Source of the DNA: Oculina patagonica
Taxonomy: Eukaryota
NCBI RefSeq assembly: GCF_052425735.1
Contig: NC_135765.1
Coordinates: forward strand, 620,001-684,000
Length of the DNA: 64,000 bases
Direction of reading: 5' to 3'
Under the pieces are notes generated by a model. It ran no database searches, was not told the DNA's origin, and was given only the letters and a program-made list of their open reading frames with translations. The stretch's first letter is position 1; each line of letters opens with the position of its first letter. Shown here piece after piece: positions 56,061 to 63,025 of this stretch. The position numbers and the translations under genes are program-made.

Positions 56061-59000
56061 TTATTTCTTTCCTTCGATCATGATAATGTGATAACCAAAC
56101 TTTGTTTTGACTGGTGGGTCGGTGTATACTGGTTTATCCACTGTGCTGGGGGAAAGAGCAAAAGCGGCATCTTGAAATGCACCAACCTGTATATGGAGAA
56201 ATTTATTTCACAAAATTAAGTTTTGGACAGGAATGAAAGGGCTAAGCTTGTGCTCACTTGCGTAGCAGTCAATTTCTTTCCAAGCATGCAGAGGAAACGA
56301 ACGAACATGCGAGCGAATGAGCGAAAAAATGTGGAGAAGAGGGGAGGGGGTGGGAGTGGGAGTGGGAAAAGAAAATGAGCTGCCTGTAACTGATCCCAGA
56401 TGAAATGCCCTGAAAAATGCTGCAATCGACCCTCCAAGTTTATTTTTTCCTTAGTGGCCTTTTGGTCCGCTCTCGGTTTTGGTCCCGTGAAAATTTTTTT
56501 CGTAAATTAATCCCCCCTTTCTTTTTTTTTTCTTTTTTTTCGGCCTTTTCTTTTTCCCCCCCCAATTTTCCCCAAGGCAATGCCCACCTTCCCTTGGGAA
56601 ATCAACTGTCACATGAGAACCACAGTTACAGTTACAGAGACCATCAAAGGTGACAGTGACAGGGACAGTGACAGTGACCGGTAACAGATCACAGTGACAG
56701 TGAGATGACAGTGACAGAAGGTAAAGGATCATTGCTTTTAATTCAATTTGTTGCTTACCATTGATCCTCTTGTCATCCATCCCAGATCACCCTGATAGCC
56801 AATCAAAAGGAGATGAATTAAAAATCAGTTAACAATAAAAACAAGCGAAAATAATGAACGACGTTTCGGTGACATCCTGGCACCATTTTCAAGTTAAAAT
56901 TCATATGCGAAAGAAAGTTATTAAAGGTGTGATAATGAATAAATTAAGATAAAAATAAATGTTCAATGTTCATGTTCATTAATGAGAACAATGTCCGTTC
57001 AAGTCTAAACAAATACCTTCGCGCGAATTGAGTCCGACTGAGTGTTAAGGCTCGGTTTCTTCATGCGAATCCACAACATTTCGTGTATTAAGCAATCGAA
57101 CTTTCCCTGACATTTCTTTAAGATCTTAAAATTGTTGGTCAGGTCGCCAACTTTATCAATTCGGTGTTCATTTTGAAGGTGTTTTCCAATGGCTGAAAAT
57201 CGGTGTTCCTCAATGCGCTTATAAAGGTGACGGCTGGTGTAACCGACGTATTCTGCATCGCACAGATCACATACATAGTTATAAACAACGCACTGTTGAT
57301 TTATTACAGGTGGTTTTGACTCCTGTAATTTGAGATCATCGCCAACTTTTCGGCTTCTAAAAACTGGTTGCAGTTTGTGGTCAAGTTTGTTACTCAAGTC
57401 CGAGAGGTGTTTCTTTACTATGTCCGCTGATTTCTGGTCCTTGAACGGCAGGACAATGCGGTAGATATTCTCTGTTTGAGGCGTCGATCGTGTGTCTTGT
57501 GACATCACTGAATTAACGAAATGGGTGATGGTGGAGTTGACAAGAGAATCTGGGTACTTGAGATTAGAAAACATCAGTTTAAGGCGTTCGCATTCTGTTG
57601 TGAATAGTTCCCATGTTGATGACAGGCGGTAAGCACGGTTTAGCATGGTTTTAACTAAAGATCTTTTGTAGCGGTTGTCGACGTGACTTTGGTAGTGTAA
57701 GAGCAGACCAGTGTTTGTTGGTTTACGGTAAACACTTGTTATCAGCTTGCAGCCCTTCTTGCATATCTCAATGCCCACAAATGGCAGCTTACCATTTGAC
57801 GCGATCTCCATGGTGAAGGATATAGATGGATGACAGTTGTTCAAAGTCTTCAGAAAGGCTTCTGCGGTTGGTATGTCTTTCACTGTGGCTAGTGTATCAT
57901 CTACGTAGCGTCTGTAGAAGTCTGGCAACTTGTTCTCGTTCTGTAGCTTTTCTTCGATGGAACAAAGAAAAGTATTGGCCATAAGGGGACCCAGAGGAGA
58001 CCCCATCGCTACTCCGTCAATTTGTTGGTAGAGTTGACCGTTAAATTGGAATAACTGTTCCTTTGTTGCTACTGACAACAGTTCAATTAAATCCCACTTG
58101 CTGATGTTTAGGTTGTGTGTGTTGTTGAACCAGTTATCAACAAAAGCTTTTTCAGCAAGGATCTCGATGGTTTCTTGTAGTGGGACGTTCGTAAATAGAG
58201 AAGAGACATCATAAGATACAAGGATGTCAGTTTCATTGAAGCTCAGATTGCGAATCTCGTCAGCGAAGGAAAATGTGTCAGATATTGTGTAGCTGTTGAT
58301 TGACAGGGGCTTGAGTTTATCGTCGAGCCATCTCGCGAGGGCGAAGTTGTAAGTACTTGTGGCTGATAGAATGGGCCTCATCGCTAGCTTTTCTTTATGG
58401 GTCTTGGGAAGACCATAGAGATGGGCGAGTCGTGATCCTTTCGGGCAAACTGAATCGGCAATCTGTTTTGGGAGAATTTTTCTAACGACGGATTCGAGGT
58501 GTTTCTCTTTCTGTAGTAAAGGGTGGTAGTTTTTGGGCTTTCGTCCACGCGTCTTGGGTCTCTCCAAACTAACGGTGGTAAATTTAGCTGTATCATTGAT
58601 GGAAGATTCACTCAAAAGGCGAACATACTCTGCCTTATCCATAACAACCACTCCTGTACCGTTATCTGGTTTCGTGATTACAATGTCATCTCTTCGTTTT
58701 AGTTGTTCAATAGCTCTTTGTAGCGCTTTCGGTGGTTTTGGGGCTTTACACTCGATGTAGTTGAGCGCGATCGATCGAAGGGTCGCCGCAGCTAATTCCT
58801 TCTTATCATCAGATAATGAGGGCTCCAGTTGCCAAAAAGCTTTCTCGAAGCTAGCTTGGATGTCCATTGGAGAGATACGTTGCGGTAAGGAGAACTTCAA
58901 ACCTCGACACAGAACGAGCTTTTGAAAGAATGAAAGCTTGTAGGAGGAAATGTTCTGGATGTGCTTGTCTACATCTTGATCGTTGTGTAGCAGTTTCATA

Positions 59001-62000
59001 ACTTTGTTGATCAACAAAGTTATGAAACTGCTACACAACGATCAAGATGTAGACAAGCACATCCAGAACATTTCCTCCTACAAGCTTTCATTCTTTCAAA
59101 AGCTCGTTCTGTGTCGAGGTTTGAAGTTCTCCTTACCGCAACGTATCTCTCCAATGGACATCCAAGCTAGCTTCGAGAAAGCTTTTTGGCAACTGGAGCC
59201 CTCATTATCTGATGATAAGAAGGAATTAGCTGCGGCGACCCTTCGATCGATCGCGCTCAACTACATCGAGTGTAAAGCCCCAAAACCACCGAAAGCGCTA
59301 CAAAGAGCTATTGAACAACTAAAACGAAGAGATGACATTGTAATCACGAAACCAGATAAAGGTACAGGAGTGGTTGTTATGGATAAGGCAGAGTATGTTC
59401 GCCTTTTGAGTGAATCTTCCATCAATGATACAGCTAAATTTACCACCGTTAGTTTGGAGAGACCCAAGACGCGTGGACGAAAGCCCAAAAACTACCACCC
59501 TTTACTACAGAAAGAGAAACACCTCGAATCCGTCGTTAGAAAAATTCTCCCAAAACAGATTGCCGATTCAGTTTGCCCGAAAGGATCACGACTCGCCCAT
59601 CTCTATGGTCTTCCCAAGACCCATAAAGAAAAGCTAGCGATGAGGCCCATTCTATCAGCCACAAGTACTTACAACTTCGCCCTCGCGAGATGGCTCGACG
59701 ATAAACTCAAGCCCCTGTCAATCAACAGCTACACAATATCTGACACATTTTCCTTCGCTGACGAGATTCGCAATCTGAGCTTCAATGAAACTGACATCCT
59801 TGTATCTTATGATGTCTCTTCTCTATTTACGAACGTCCCACTACAAGAAACCATCGAGATCCTTGCTGAAAAAGCTTTTGTTGATAACTGGTTCAACAAC
59901 ACACACAACCTAAACATCAGCAAGTGGGATTTAATTGAACTGTTGTCAGTAGCAACAAAGGAACAGTTATTCCAATTTAACGGTCAACTCTACCAACAAA
60001 TTGACGGAGTAGCGATGGGGTCTCCTCTGGGTCCCCTTATGGCCAATACTTTTCTTTGTTCCATCGAAGAAAAGCTACAGAACGAGAACAAGTTGCCAGA
60101 CTTCTACAGACGCTACGTAGATGATACACTAGCCACAGTGAAAGACATACCAACCGCAGAAGCCTTTCTGAAGACTTTGAACAACTGTCATCCATCTATA
60201 TCCTTCACCATGGAGATCGCGTCAAATGGTAAGCTGCCATTTGTGGGCATTGAGATATGCAAGAAGGGCTGCAAGCTGATAACAAGTGTTTACCGTAAAC
60301 CAACAAACACTGGTCTGCTCTTACACTACCAAAGTCACGTCGACAACCGCTACAAAAGATCTTTAGTTAAAACCATGCTAAACCGTGCTTACCGCCTGTC
60401 ATCAACATGGGAACTATTCACAACAGAATGCGAACGCCTTAAACTGATGTTTTCTAATCTCAAGTACCCAGATTCTCTTGTCAACTCCACCATCACCCAT
60501 TTCGTTAATTCAGTGATGTCACAAGACACACGATCGACGCCTCAAACAGAGAATATCTACCGCATTGTCCTGCCGTTCAAGGACCAGAAATCAGCGGACA
60601 TAGTAAAGAAACACCTCTCGGACTTGAGTAACAAACTTGACCACAAACTGCAACCAGTTTTTAGAAGCCGAAAAGTTGGCGATGATCTCAAATTACAGGA
60701 GTCAAAACCACCTGTAATAAATCAACAGTGCGTTGTTTATAACTATGTATGTGATCTGTGCGATGCAGAATACGTCGGTTACACCAGCCGTCACCTTTAT
60801 AAGCGCATTGAGGAACACCGATTTTCAGCCATTGGAAAACACCTTCAAAATGAACACCGAATTGATAAAGTTGGCGACCTGACCAACAATTTTAAGATCT
60901 TAAAGAAATGTCAGGGAAAGTTCGATTGCTTAATACACGAAATGTTGTGGATTCGCATGAAGAAACCGAGCCTTAACACTCAGTCGGACTCAATTCGCGC
61001 GAAGGTATTTGTTTAGACTTGAACGGACATTGTTCTCATTAATGAACATGAACATTGAACATTTATTTTTATCTTAATTTATTCATTATCACACCTTTAT
61101 CTTAGTATAAATAACTTTCTTTCGCATATGAATTTTAACTTGAAAATGGTGCCAGGATGTCACCGAAACGTCGTTCATTATTTTCGCTTGTATTTATTGT
61201 TAACTGTATTTCTAAATTTAATCTTATAAGAATTAAAAATCAACCACAAAATACATACAATCAACGGGCAATGTTTTCATTTTTAGCAATATTTTCAGAA
61301 GGGGAAGATATTACAGAAGGAGAGACCAAACAATAATGGTTGAACTCAACAAGTGACAGGAACCTACAGTGTATGAGGAAGTGGGAACACAGGGAGCCCA
61401 CAAAAGCAGTGTGACTGTATGTTTGAAATATGAAGAAATATATGAGAATATTTAAAGGGTCTTAGTGCAGTAGCAGCCAATCCAGGCAGGTAGGTAAAGT
61501 CTGCATAGGAGCCTAGTGACCCATCAGGCAGAGGTTATCCCTGTTTTGGTAACATGAAGCGAATTAAAGTATTTCTATTCCCCCTGGATGAGATGCTAGT
61601 CCATTGCAGAGTTACCCCCTGCATTAATTTTGCCGGTACCCATTTATACACCTGGGTAGAGAGAGGCACTGTGAGAGTAAAGTGTTTTGCCCAAGAACAC
61701 AACACAAGGACTCTGGCAGGGCTCGAACCCGGACCGCTCGATCTGGAGTCCGGCGCACTAACCATTAGGCCACTACACCTCCCAGCAGCCAATCCAAGAC
61801 TTTTCAAATCGCACAAATTTGCCATTTAGAGCCACAGAGATGACAAAACACAACAACTGATGCACATTTAAATTTATTTTAGGCTTAACAGAGACTTAAC
61901 TTGCAATACTTTGGCAGTAAAAAGACCCTTTCGATATTCCCATCCATTTCGAATATACAAACAGTCAAACCACTTGTTTGCGTCCCCTGTGCTTGGAATG

Positions 62001-63025
62001 GTGAAAATGGAAATGGATTACACAACACTCTTGTACATACCCCTTGCCTTGCTTTATCTTCACTGTATGCTGAGGCAACTTCATTAAACTTCTGACCATC
62101 CTTTATCTTGGCCATGGCTTCCATTACTTTGGAGTGTTTTTCACATAAAATATGTCGCACCTGTGTGTCAATGAAAAGCAGCTCAGGAAAGAAAATATAC
62201 ATTTTTAACTACAACCTGAACATTTTGAAAACTTTGTAAACTAATGGATGATCATATAATCATGTACCCTTACACTTTAAATTTCCAAGCTCAAGGTACA
62301 TTGCTCATTGTTGGCTTGTTAGTTTTTTTTTCTTAGTTTCTCATTTGGAGGTACTGTTTCTTGTTAATGATGAGAACTTAGGCCTGGTTCATACTAGCGA
62401 CATAACGACATGGACATAATGACATAAAGAAAAGTTCAGTTCTTTCCTTATGTTGTTATGCTTATGCCATTATGTTCCAACTATGTCATTATGTCATGTT
62501 GTTCACACTGGGGACATAAAACATCAGCGTGAGGTGTTTTTAGCATTTGCGTGACCTTGCCGTTATGTTGCTAGGGTGAACCAGGCCTTACAATGCTCAA
62601 ATGGGCTCCTGGCTCCATTACTTGATAAATTTCTTAAATTTTGCCTGACAATATATTGATATGGTATTAAAAGAGAAATAATATACTGATCACACCGGGG
62701 GTGAGGGGGTCAGTTGCCATACCTTTACTGCAGTTCCACCTTTCTTTGCCTTCCCTCCACTGGCACCCTCATCCTCACCACCCCCTCCCCCTGAAATTCA
62801 AAATAAACGCAGCTCAGCGGAATATTTGTAACAGCATTTGAGTGGCCACTGGAAAAGATGGACAGCTATTTATCTGTTTCTTGTTTTGAGTCCACTTTCT
62901 TCTGGGTGTACTCTGTTTACTGTTTGGGGCTTTTGCTCCAGCTCCAGCGATAACACAGACTTGCCTTTTGCTGCTCCTTTTCCTTTCTCTTGTTTTCCAC
63001 CACTCTTTCCTTTTTTAGGCGGCAT
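56061..63025 (-). CDS. PIN4: Peptidyl-prolyl cis-trans isomerase NIMA-interacting 4 (parvulin-14)
   Basis: Exons 63025-62965 (MPPKKGK..., GC donor), 62790-62723 (...KKGGTAVK), 62160-62041 ([16 protein letters not shown]...[10 protein letters not shown]), 56791-56759 ([11 protein letters not shown]) and about 56186-56061 ([41 protein letters not shown]). The frame is consistent throughout. Confidence 0.95.
56857..56895 (-). ncRNA. Minimal type I hammerhead ribozyme (U3-A8 variant), left arm
   Basis: Reverse complement of the 61137-61175 motif; it is in the sense orientation of the PIN4 pre-mRNA. Confidence 0.7.
57005..58999 (-). CDS. Penelope-type RT + GIY-YIG endonuclease, left arm (DKG motif changed to DNG), probably 5'-truncated
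   Basis: Motifs [36 protein letters not shown] and [27 protein letters not shown]. The first ATG is at 58999. Confidence 0.9.
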   Translation of the reverse strand: MKLLHNDQDVDKHIQNISSYKLSFFQKLVLCRGLKFSLPQRISPMDIQASFEKAFWQLEPSLSDDKKELAAATLRSIALNYIECKAPKPPKALQRAIEQLKRRDDIVITKPDNGTGVVVMDKAEYVRLLSESSINDTAKFTTVSLERPKTRGRKPKNYHPLLQKEKHLESVVRKILPKQIADSVCPKGSRLAHLYGLPKTHKEKLAMRPILSATSTYNFALARWLDDKLKPLSINSYTISDTFSFADEIRNLSFNETDILVSYDVSSLFTNVPLQETIEILAEKAFVDNWFNNTHNLNISKWDLIELLSVATKEQLFQFNGQLYQQIDGVAMGSPLGPLMANTFLCSIEEKLQNENKLPDFYRRYVDDTLATVKDIPTAEAFLKTLNNCHPSISFTMEIASNGKLPFVGIEICKKGCKLITSVYRKPTNTGLLLHYQSHVDNRYKRSLVKTMLNRAYRLSSTWELFTTECERLKLMFSNLKYPDSLVNSTITHFVNSVMSQDTRSTPQTENIYRIVLPFKDQKSADIVKKHLSDLSNKLDHKLQPVFRSRKVGDDLKLQESKPPVINQQCVVYNYVCDLCDAEYVGYTSRHLYKRIEEHRFSAIGKHLQNEHRIDKVGDLTNNFKILKKCQGKFDCLIHEMLWIRMKKPSLNTQSDSIRAKVFV
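59022..61016 (+). CDS. Penelope-type RT + GIY-YIG endonuclease, right arm (DKG intact), probably 5'-truncated
   Basis: Uninterrupted ORF with the same motifs. It lacks a Cys-rich linker between RT and EN, consistent with Penelope/Poseidon rather than Neptune. Confidence 0.92.
   Translation: MKLLHNDQDVDKHIQNISSYKLSFFQKLVLCRGLKFSLPQRISPMDIQASFEKAFWQLEPSLSDDKKELAAATLRSIALNYIECKAPKPPKALQRAIEQLKRRDDIVITKPDKGTGVVVMDKAEYVRLLSESSINDTAKFTTVSLERPKTRGRKPKNYHPLLQKEKHLESVVRKILPKQIADSVCPKGSRLAHLYGLPKTHKEKLAMRPILSATSTYNFALARWLDDKLKPLSINSYTISDTFSFADEIRNLSFNETDILVSYDVSSLFTNVPLQETIEILAEKAFVDNWFNNTHNLNISKWDLIELLSVATKEQLFQFNGQLYQQIDGVAMGSPLGPLMANTFLCSIEEKLQNENKLPDFYRRYVDDTLATVKDIPTAEAFLKTLNNCHPSISFTMEIASNGKLPFVGIEICKKGCKLITSVYRKPTNTGLLLHYQSHVDNRYKRSLVKTMLNRAYRLSSTWELFTTECERLKLMFSNLKYPDSLVNSTITHFVNSVMSQDTRSTPQTENIYRIVLPFKDQKSADIVKKHLSDLSNKLDHKLQPVFRSRKVGDDLKLQESKPPVINQQCVVYNYVCDLCDAEYVGYTSRHLYKRIEEHRFSAIGKHLQNEHRIDKVGDLTNNFKILKKCQGKFDCLIHEMLWIRMKKPSLNTQSDSIRAKVFV
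61137..61175 (+). ncRNA. Minimal type I hammerhead ribozyme (U3-A8 variant), right arm
   Basis: AAC-UUGAAAA-U-GGUG(ccaggaugu)CACC-GAA-ACGU-C-GUU: stem I AAC/GUU, core UUGAAAA, stem II GGUG/CACC, palindromic stem III ACGU and a GUC cleavage triplet. It lies in the element's 3' UTR, where PLE hammerheads are known to occur. Confidence 0.72.
61515..61782 (-). mobile_element. tRNA-derived SINE, near full length
   Basis: The minus-strand head ggtgtagtggcctaatggttagtgcgccggactccagatcgagcggtccgggttcgagccc has Pol III A and B boxes, followed by a core shared with other copies in the window. Confidence 0.85.
62381..62587. mobile_element. PIF/Harbinger-like MITE in PIN4 intron 2
   Basis: TTA|ggcctggttcatactagcgacataacg ... 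cgttatgttgctagggtgaaccaggcc|TTA. Confidence 0.8.

Follow-up and report, generated by a model that had tools for sequence, protein, structure and literature searches.

Why should an intron of a broadly expressed gene carry a 4.4-kb palindrome beside a splice acceptor, and what would become of an RNA copied from it? The question is raised by a 64-kb window of the Oculina patagonica genome (the whole stretch of DNA analyzed here; positions count from its start), in which intron 3 of the parvulin-14 gene PIN4 contains an inverted duplication without spacer. By their sequence, its arms are two 5'-truncated copies of a Penelope-like element (PLE), placed head-to-head within a single target-site duplication (TSD). 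The explanation that we favor is one recent PLE retrotransposition, which left a neutral or mildly harmful allele whose hairpin would have an ordinary fate and no selected function; as a whole, we give it a probability of about 0.65.

Structure of the palindrome and identity of its arms

The repeat search returned the inverted repeat 56922-59010 / 59011-61099, with 0 nt of spacer between the arms. The complete spacerless inverted duplication occupies 56828-61229 (4.4 kb), and its centre lies between 59010 and 59011, where ...TTGTTGA is followed by TCAACAA.... Gapped alignment widens the arms to 56828 and ~61206, with 2180/2182 identities and one 11-nt indel. The corresponding segment (61100-61110) is found in the right arm only, and this indel is the reason why the outer 138 nt scored only 86% in the ungapped repeat search. 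The 100% arm identity given by that search is a rounded value, and a base-by-base check revealed one internal non-complementary pair (58661 G / 59360 A). A second mismatch is at 56840/61192. Counting the indel, the arms differ in three places in 2.2 kb, about 0.14%.

On the right side, the insert ends in a 23-nt tail (61207-61229) that has no counterpart in the left arm. The whole insert is flanked by the 13-nt TSD GAATTAAAAATCA at 56815-56827 and 61230-61242, of which just these two copies are present in the window, against a chance expectation of 0.01. The borders between element and TSD are uncertain by 2-4 nt owing to microhomology, with TG at the left junction and some family copies reaching ~61233. 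The tail resembles the reverse complement of the target DNA beside the other end (56806-56827), a likeness which suggests annealing of the template 3' end to the target at priming. The features of the insert are as follows.

56828-59010, minus strand: left arm, 5'-truncated PLE, sense in the PIN4 pre-mRNA, with a 677-aa open frame at 57005-59038
59011-61206, plus strand: right arm, a second copy of this 5'-truncated PLE, which is antisense within the PIN4 pre-mRNA, with the open reading frame (ORF) at 58983-61016 and the extra 11 nt at 61100-61110
59009-59012: centre of symmetry and 4-nt loop of the predicted hairpin (...TTGA followed by TCAA...), with a TGATCA site
61207-61229, plus strand: one-sided 3' tail, at the RNA level a partial complement of the 36 nt before the acceptor
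56815-56827: proximal TSD copy GAATTAAAAATCA, at -36 to -24 relative to the acceptor of exon 4, with UGAUUUUUAAUUC as its minus-strand reading
61230-61242: distal TSD copy GAATTAAAAATCA
56856-56892, minus strand: hammerhead-core-like motif UUGAAAA...GAAAC, sense in the PIN4 pre-mRNA, with a mirror copy at 61140-61176 on the plus strand

Both arms hold the same open frame of 677 codons. Each copy reads away from the centre, the plus-strand one at 58983-61016 and the minus-strand one at 57005-59038. In this frame Pfam recognizes RVT_1 at residues 218-402 (E = 3.3e-11; 43.7 bits, cut-off 29.6). The final 117 residues, near the C-terminus, match GIY-YIG with 25.6 bits, where the cut-off is 22.6. 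Canonical PLEs are defined by a reverse transcriptase (RT) with a GIY-YIG domain after it (PMC8557442), and on their domain content we classify the arms as a canonical endonuclease-containing (EN+) PLE. Among ESM-Atlas clusters, the closest contain eukaryotic proteins of 726-826 aa that combine RVT_1, HTH_animal and GIY-YIG, and from their length it follows that the arm ORF lacks roughly 50-150 N-terminal residues. A PDB sequence search with the arm ORF gave just weak prokaryotic RT matches, uninformative on the PLE subtype.

For comparison, contigs of four public coral runs were aligned to the window: X1 (DNA, organism A), X9 (DNA, organism D), X17 and X19 (both RNA-type). All of these runs consist of contigs, with no small-RNA library among them. 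In another coral, a 1225-nt contig (X9, record 27) follows the right arm outward from 59010, and on the 5' side of 59010 it has 75 unrelated letters that keep the frame. Since this contig continues beyond that point, the centre of the palindrome represents a 5'-truncation point common to both arms. Copies of the family in other corals are mostly 95-99% identical to the insert, and in the coral contigs they end at about 61202-61206 or about 61233. No further copy of the element was found within the 64-kb window.

Some observations on the arms can be added. The 58661 / 59360 difference alters codon 126, the right arm having K in a conserved ...KPDKGTG... stretch and the left arm N. Near each outer end there is a hammerhead-like motif, composed of UUGAAAA, a GGUG/CACC stem and GAAAC, with an extra U between core and helix II that makes it non-canonical. 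The Rfam hammerhead models gave no match at E <= 1 over 7 kb, nor at E <= 10 over 231 nt; at its minimum free energy (MFE) the region folds into a structure other than a hammerhead, with a non-significant z-score. Matches to microRNA precursors in the Rfam scans, which arise from the centre of the palindrome, were rejected, as they are mirrored on both strands, fall below the gathering score and would be obtained alike with any perfect hairpin.

The gene around the insert, identified as PIN4 by motif matches to the human sequence, lies on the minus strand with GT-AG borders and with its coding motifs, including KFGYHIIM, in order.

near 63025, minus strand: PIN4 exon 1
near 62790, minus strand: PIN4 exon 2
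62160-62041, minus strand: PIN4 exon 3 (VRHILCEKH...DKARQG)
56792-62040, minus strand: PIN4 intron 3, 5249 nt in the assembly and 834 nt in the empty-site allele
56791-56759, minus strand: PIN4 exon 4, 33 nt, bordered by cag and gtaagc
56186-56061, minus strand: PIN4 exon 5, the last coding exon (VGAFQDAAF...)

An initial annotation of this DNA had placed the palindrome in PIN4 intron 3, with its boundary 36 nt from the acceptor of a 33-nt exon 4, and had read its ORF as Penelope sequence. The exon numbering is confirmed by exons 1 and 2 near 63025 and 62790, the distance by the gap 56792-56827 between insert and acceptor (36 nt), and the nature of the ORF by RVT_1 and GIY-YIG. The splice joints 62041>56791 and 56759>56186 were seen in the RNA-type contigs X17 and X19, from two organisms, which are the same two whose DNA has the empty site described below. 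PIN4 is thus expressed and spliced in those two organisms. An unspliced contig with the empty intron is also present in X19 at low depth; no more can be concluded from it than that intron RNA can be detected or that X19 contains some DNA.

Empty site, age and origin of the insertion

In several of the aligned samples the insert is missing. The joint 56815>61231 skips 4415 nt, the sum of the insert (4402 nt) and a single TSD copy (13 nt), and its position is ambiguous by 12 nt on account of the TSD. It was found in DNA run X1 at a depth of 36.2 (single-copy flanks 28-36) and in DNA run X9 at a depth of 72.3 (flanks 61-66), in the latter inside one 361-nt contig where record letters 98/99 are adjacent; it is also present in X19. 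This joint is the exact pre-insertion site, so the boundaries of the insert and its TSD are proven and the insertion is absent from those samples. The earlier interpretation of the 13-nt repeat as a TSD is likewise borne out, the second copy being accounted for by the independent empty site in X1, X9 and X19. The flanks of the other samples differ from the window by 1.5-2.7%, and the ~0.14% difference between the arms indicates that the insertion is much younger than the divergence of the flanks. Judging from these alignments, the insertion is genuine and recent. The ORFs of both arms are still open, which likewise speaks for its youth.

Contigs of X9 and X1 also contain joints at mirror positions of the element, namely 57335>60685 (+1 nt), 57894>60131 (+2 nt) and 58600>59421 (+22 nt). 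By their sequence, they represent separate head-to-head insertions of this family, truncated at other points. The variability of the break points indicates that head-to-head fold-back is routine for this Penelope family.

PLEs typically give inverted 5'-truncated copies with one-sided tails of 30-40 bp (PMC8557442, PMC3846280). The head-to-head orientation is the commonest inverted arrangement and has been attributed to self-priming (PMC3846280). We suggest that a single PLE retrotransposition produced both 5'-truncated copies at this locus, placed head-to-head at the same truncation point, with one TSD and a tail at one end. The junction could have been formed while target-primed reverse transcription was under way, if the nascent cDNA folded back or primed its own copying.

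Other repeats are found in the same introns. An insertion of ~300 nt in intron 3 (61485-61783, minus strand) has a tRNA-like head, with A-box and B-box-like GGTTCGAGCCC, and is flanked by the 13-nt direct repeat AGCAGCCAATCCA (61472-61484 and 61784-61796). It is probably a tRNA-derived short interspersed element, sense to PIN4, to judge from these sequence features. Its word depth in the DNA runs is about 4e5, against about 30 for single-copy flanks, and ARAGORN called no tRNA at 61485-61783. In intron 4, the segment 56350-56549 is a very high-copy repeat (word depth 1.3e4-2.8e4 in the DNA runs), and Tandem Repeats Finder revealed a (GTGACA)n microsatellite of about 11 units at 56650-56717, about 100 nt from the insert. 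PLEs are reported to favor microsatellites, but the Penelope insert is not inside the (GTGACA)n array, and we do not regard it as a microsatellite-targeted insertion.

Predicted hairpin in the PIN4 transcript and alternative readings

PIN4 is transcribed from high to low coordinates, which places the antisense arm (61229->59011) first and the sense arm (59010->56828) after it. When the PIN4-sense RNA 61400->56792 was folded with ViennaRNA, the MFE was -4301.2 kcal/mol, the arms forming 2203 pairs with each other around a loop of 4 nt; folded separately, the arms gave -617.2 and -491.0 kcal/mol (sum -1108). As modeled, the thermodynamic potential for a duplex of ~2.2 kb is overwhelming. To this extent, the 2.2-kb hairpin proposed in the initial annotation is upheld, that is, as a folding potential of -4301.2 kcal/mol.

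The same annotation had proposed that the TSD preserved the branch point of the intron. In sequence this stands: UUAAU is present in the proximal TSD copy, with its A at about -27 from the acceptor, and the end of the element adds UUAAC at about -38. UUAAU is a putative branch point. The MFE structure does not leave it free, as the stem extends weakly into the last 36 nt, where the proximal TSD copy, UUAAU included, becomes paired; the tail/flank duplex amounts to -9.2 kcal/mol. On this model, the hairpin might hinder recognition of the 3' splice region. The PIN4-sense strand of the insert also contains six AATAAA/ATTAAA signals (61222, 61198, 61083, 61067, 59935 and 57305), one GTAAGT at 59672 and one polypyrimidine tract with AG at about 59519. 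If the hairpin forms, the sense hammerhead-like motif would be locked in the duplex.

We propose that PIN4 transcription would read through the insert, antisense arm and then sense arm, and that the two arms of the intron RNA would tend to pair along ~2.2 kb, leaving a loop of 4 nt. As is ordinary for intronic inverted repeats, this duplex would most likely be hyper-edited by nuclear ADAR and degraded along with the spliced-out intron, yielding few small interfering RNAs (siRNAs) if any. The RNA-type differences on the element in X17 (A>G 2 and T>C 3 versus C>T 4 and G>A 3) have no A>G / T>C excess, and they come from contigs of the family rather than from the PIN4 locus. We see no sign of a selected function, and the insert is best regarded as an allele of recent origin that is neutral or mildly harmful.

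Several points weigh against this explanation. The filled junctions and the centre were not seen in any of the four aligned runs, the best public run contains only 0.65 of the sampled words, and the filled allele is represented by the assembly alone. A junction without any spacer does not readily arise when a single cDNA simply snaps back, since a hairpin needs a loop. At the RNA level, local co-transcriptional folding of the first arm, helicases, the intronic polyadenylation signals or the hammerhead-like motif could block or shorten the hairpin. The unconfirmed junctions and centre would also be expected if the palindrome were an assembly artefact, either a long-read mis-join or an over-polished collapse of an ordinary Penelope insertion. 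Chimeric long reads formed by fold-back typically produce just such a near-perfect palindrome without spacer, and PLE structures are known to trouble assemblies (PMC8557442). Against such an origin, the flanks are different, correctly ordered parts of one gene instead of mirror images, and the 13-nt TSD matches exactly the empty site of independent short-read contigs. It is also clear from the tail, the 11-nt indel and the two substitutions that each arm was resolved on its own, and the short-read contigs of other corals hold analogous head-to-head junctions of the same family. We therefore consider an artefact very unlikely.

Two other alternatives accept the insertion and differ on its effect. 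It may harm the PIN4 allele, either because the base of the stem hides the branch point and the polypyrimidine tract, so that exon 4 is skipped in frame and the core of the isomerase domain is lost, or because transcripts end early at the polyadenylation signals or at the sense hammerhead-like motif. The pairing of UUAAU and of parts of the last 36 nt (-9.2 kcal/mol for tail and flank) agrees with this, as do the six polyadenylation signals, the GTAAGT and the polypyrimidine tract with AG inside the insert; that the insertion is unseen in other samples is expected of a rare, mildly harmful allele. On the other hand, the stem pairs with the flank weakly and through AT-rich sequence, the 36 nt that contain every 3' splice signal have kept their sequence and Rfam recognizes no hammerhead. 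Introns carrying long inverted repeats are, moreover, commonly spliced normally, and we regard this kind of damage as unlikely. Quite unlikely, in our view, is the contrary proposal that the PIN4-driven hairpin is an effective trigger of the hairpin RNA (hpRNA) type, from which Dicer siRNAs silence the whole Penelope family in trans, and that PIN4 escapes harm since the folded intron is in effect short again. The duplex potential is very large, the hairpin spans nearly the whole RT-EN ORF, and with family copies elsewhere mostly 95-99% identical many 21-mers would match. Yet the family ORFs stay open here, which is not suggestive of effective silencing. The hairpin is also wholly intronic and nuclear, where ADAR editing usually competes with dicing, and editing and Dicer processing of one duplex tend to act against each other more than to add up. 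Such editing is extensive in coral (PMC5625713). In the only experimental precedent that we found, inverted Penelope copies in Drosophila melanogaster transformants gave siRNAs mapping exactly to the inverted regions, but these did not silence Penelope efficiently (PMC3681739), which makes silencing in trans improbable.

Comparison with known systems

As a product of retrotransposition, the locus resembles canonical EN+ PLE insertions (Evgen'ev & Arkhipova; Arkhipova et al. 2013, PMC3846280; Craig et al. 2021, PMC8557442) in its ORF with RT and C-terminal GIY-YIG, in 5' truncation, in the head-to-head arrangement within one TSD and in the microhomology at the junctions. A short tail at one end is another shared trait, although its 23 nt are somewhat fewer than the 30-40 bp usually quoted. 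Unlike those insertions, the PIN4 insert has no full-length unit and no direct pseudo-long terminal repeat (pLTR) between the inverted copies, and its arms are equal in length with zero spacer, which makes it an extreme symmetric form. The hammerhead usual in canonical PLEs is not recognized by Rfam here, where just a variant core-like motif is visible.

The consequences of the PIN4 insertion are predicted, not observed. It would be highly improbable, in our opinion, that the locus represents the one-step birth of a working hairpin small-RNA locus in a cnidarian, with carriers dicing the PIN4 intron into siRNAs which repress a still-active Penelope family. If this were true, carriers and non-carriers would differ in Penelope activity, and the locus would be a natural case of the birth of a transposon-silencing locus outside Bilateria. 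A carrier colony, if found, would in any case offer a clean natural test of whether long endogenous dsRNA (double-stranded RNA) meets ADAR editing, Dicer or plain intron turnover in cnidarians. It could also show whether a duplex ending at the branch-point region disturbs splicing.

For the RNA, three known systems can be compared. In Drosophila hpRNA loci and intron-spliced hairpin RNAi transgenes, the transcript is a long perfect hairpin that serves Dicer as substrate, and the PIN4 locus shares with them a long inverted repeat with the potential for an intramolecular duplex (2203 pairs). In those loci and transgenes the arms are in the mature transcript and the intron is at most the loop, whereas in PIN4 the entire hairpin is intronic and leaves with the lariat. 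Closer in element class are the inverted Penelope copies of D. melanogaster, for which long inverted repeats were likewise proposed to give dsRNA and then dicing (PMC3681739). In those transformants siRNAs were observed (PMC3681739), while for the PIN4 locus we have sequence only, a cnidarian host and the intron of a host gene as driver. The Penelope copies of rotifers are associated mainly with antisense piRNA-like small RNAs (PMC3846280).

Intronic ADAR substrates, such as human inverted Alu pairs and the editing-enriched intronic hairpins of C. elegans, also consist of two inverted repeat copies in one pre-mRNA, which pair into a long duplex within an intron. Hyper-editing of dsRNA from repeats occurs widely across Metazoa; in one coral, 127,069 sites have been recorded (PMC5625713). 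Compared with typical edited repeat pairs, the PIN4 duplex is far longer and more perfect (about 2.2 kb with 3 differences) and abuts a 3' splice site. Both the layout of the insert and its predicted RNA biology are thus already known, and the locus adds one example of the normal inverted product of PLEs. It is distinguished by how long and how perfect its duplex is, by lying at a 3' splice site of a broadly expressed gene and by the availability of a defined empty allele.

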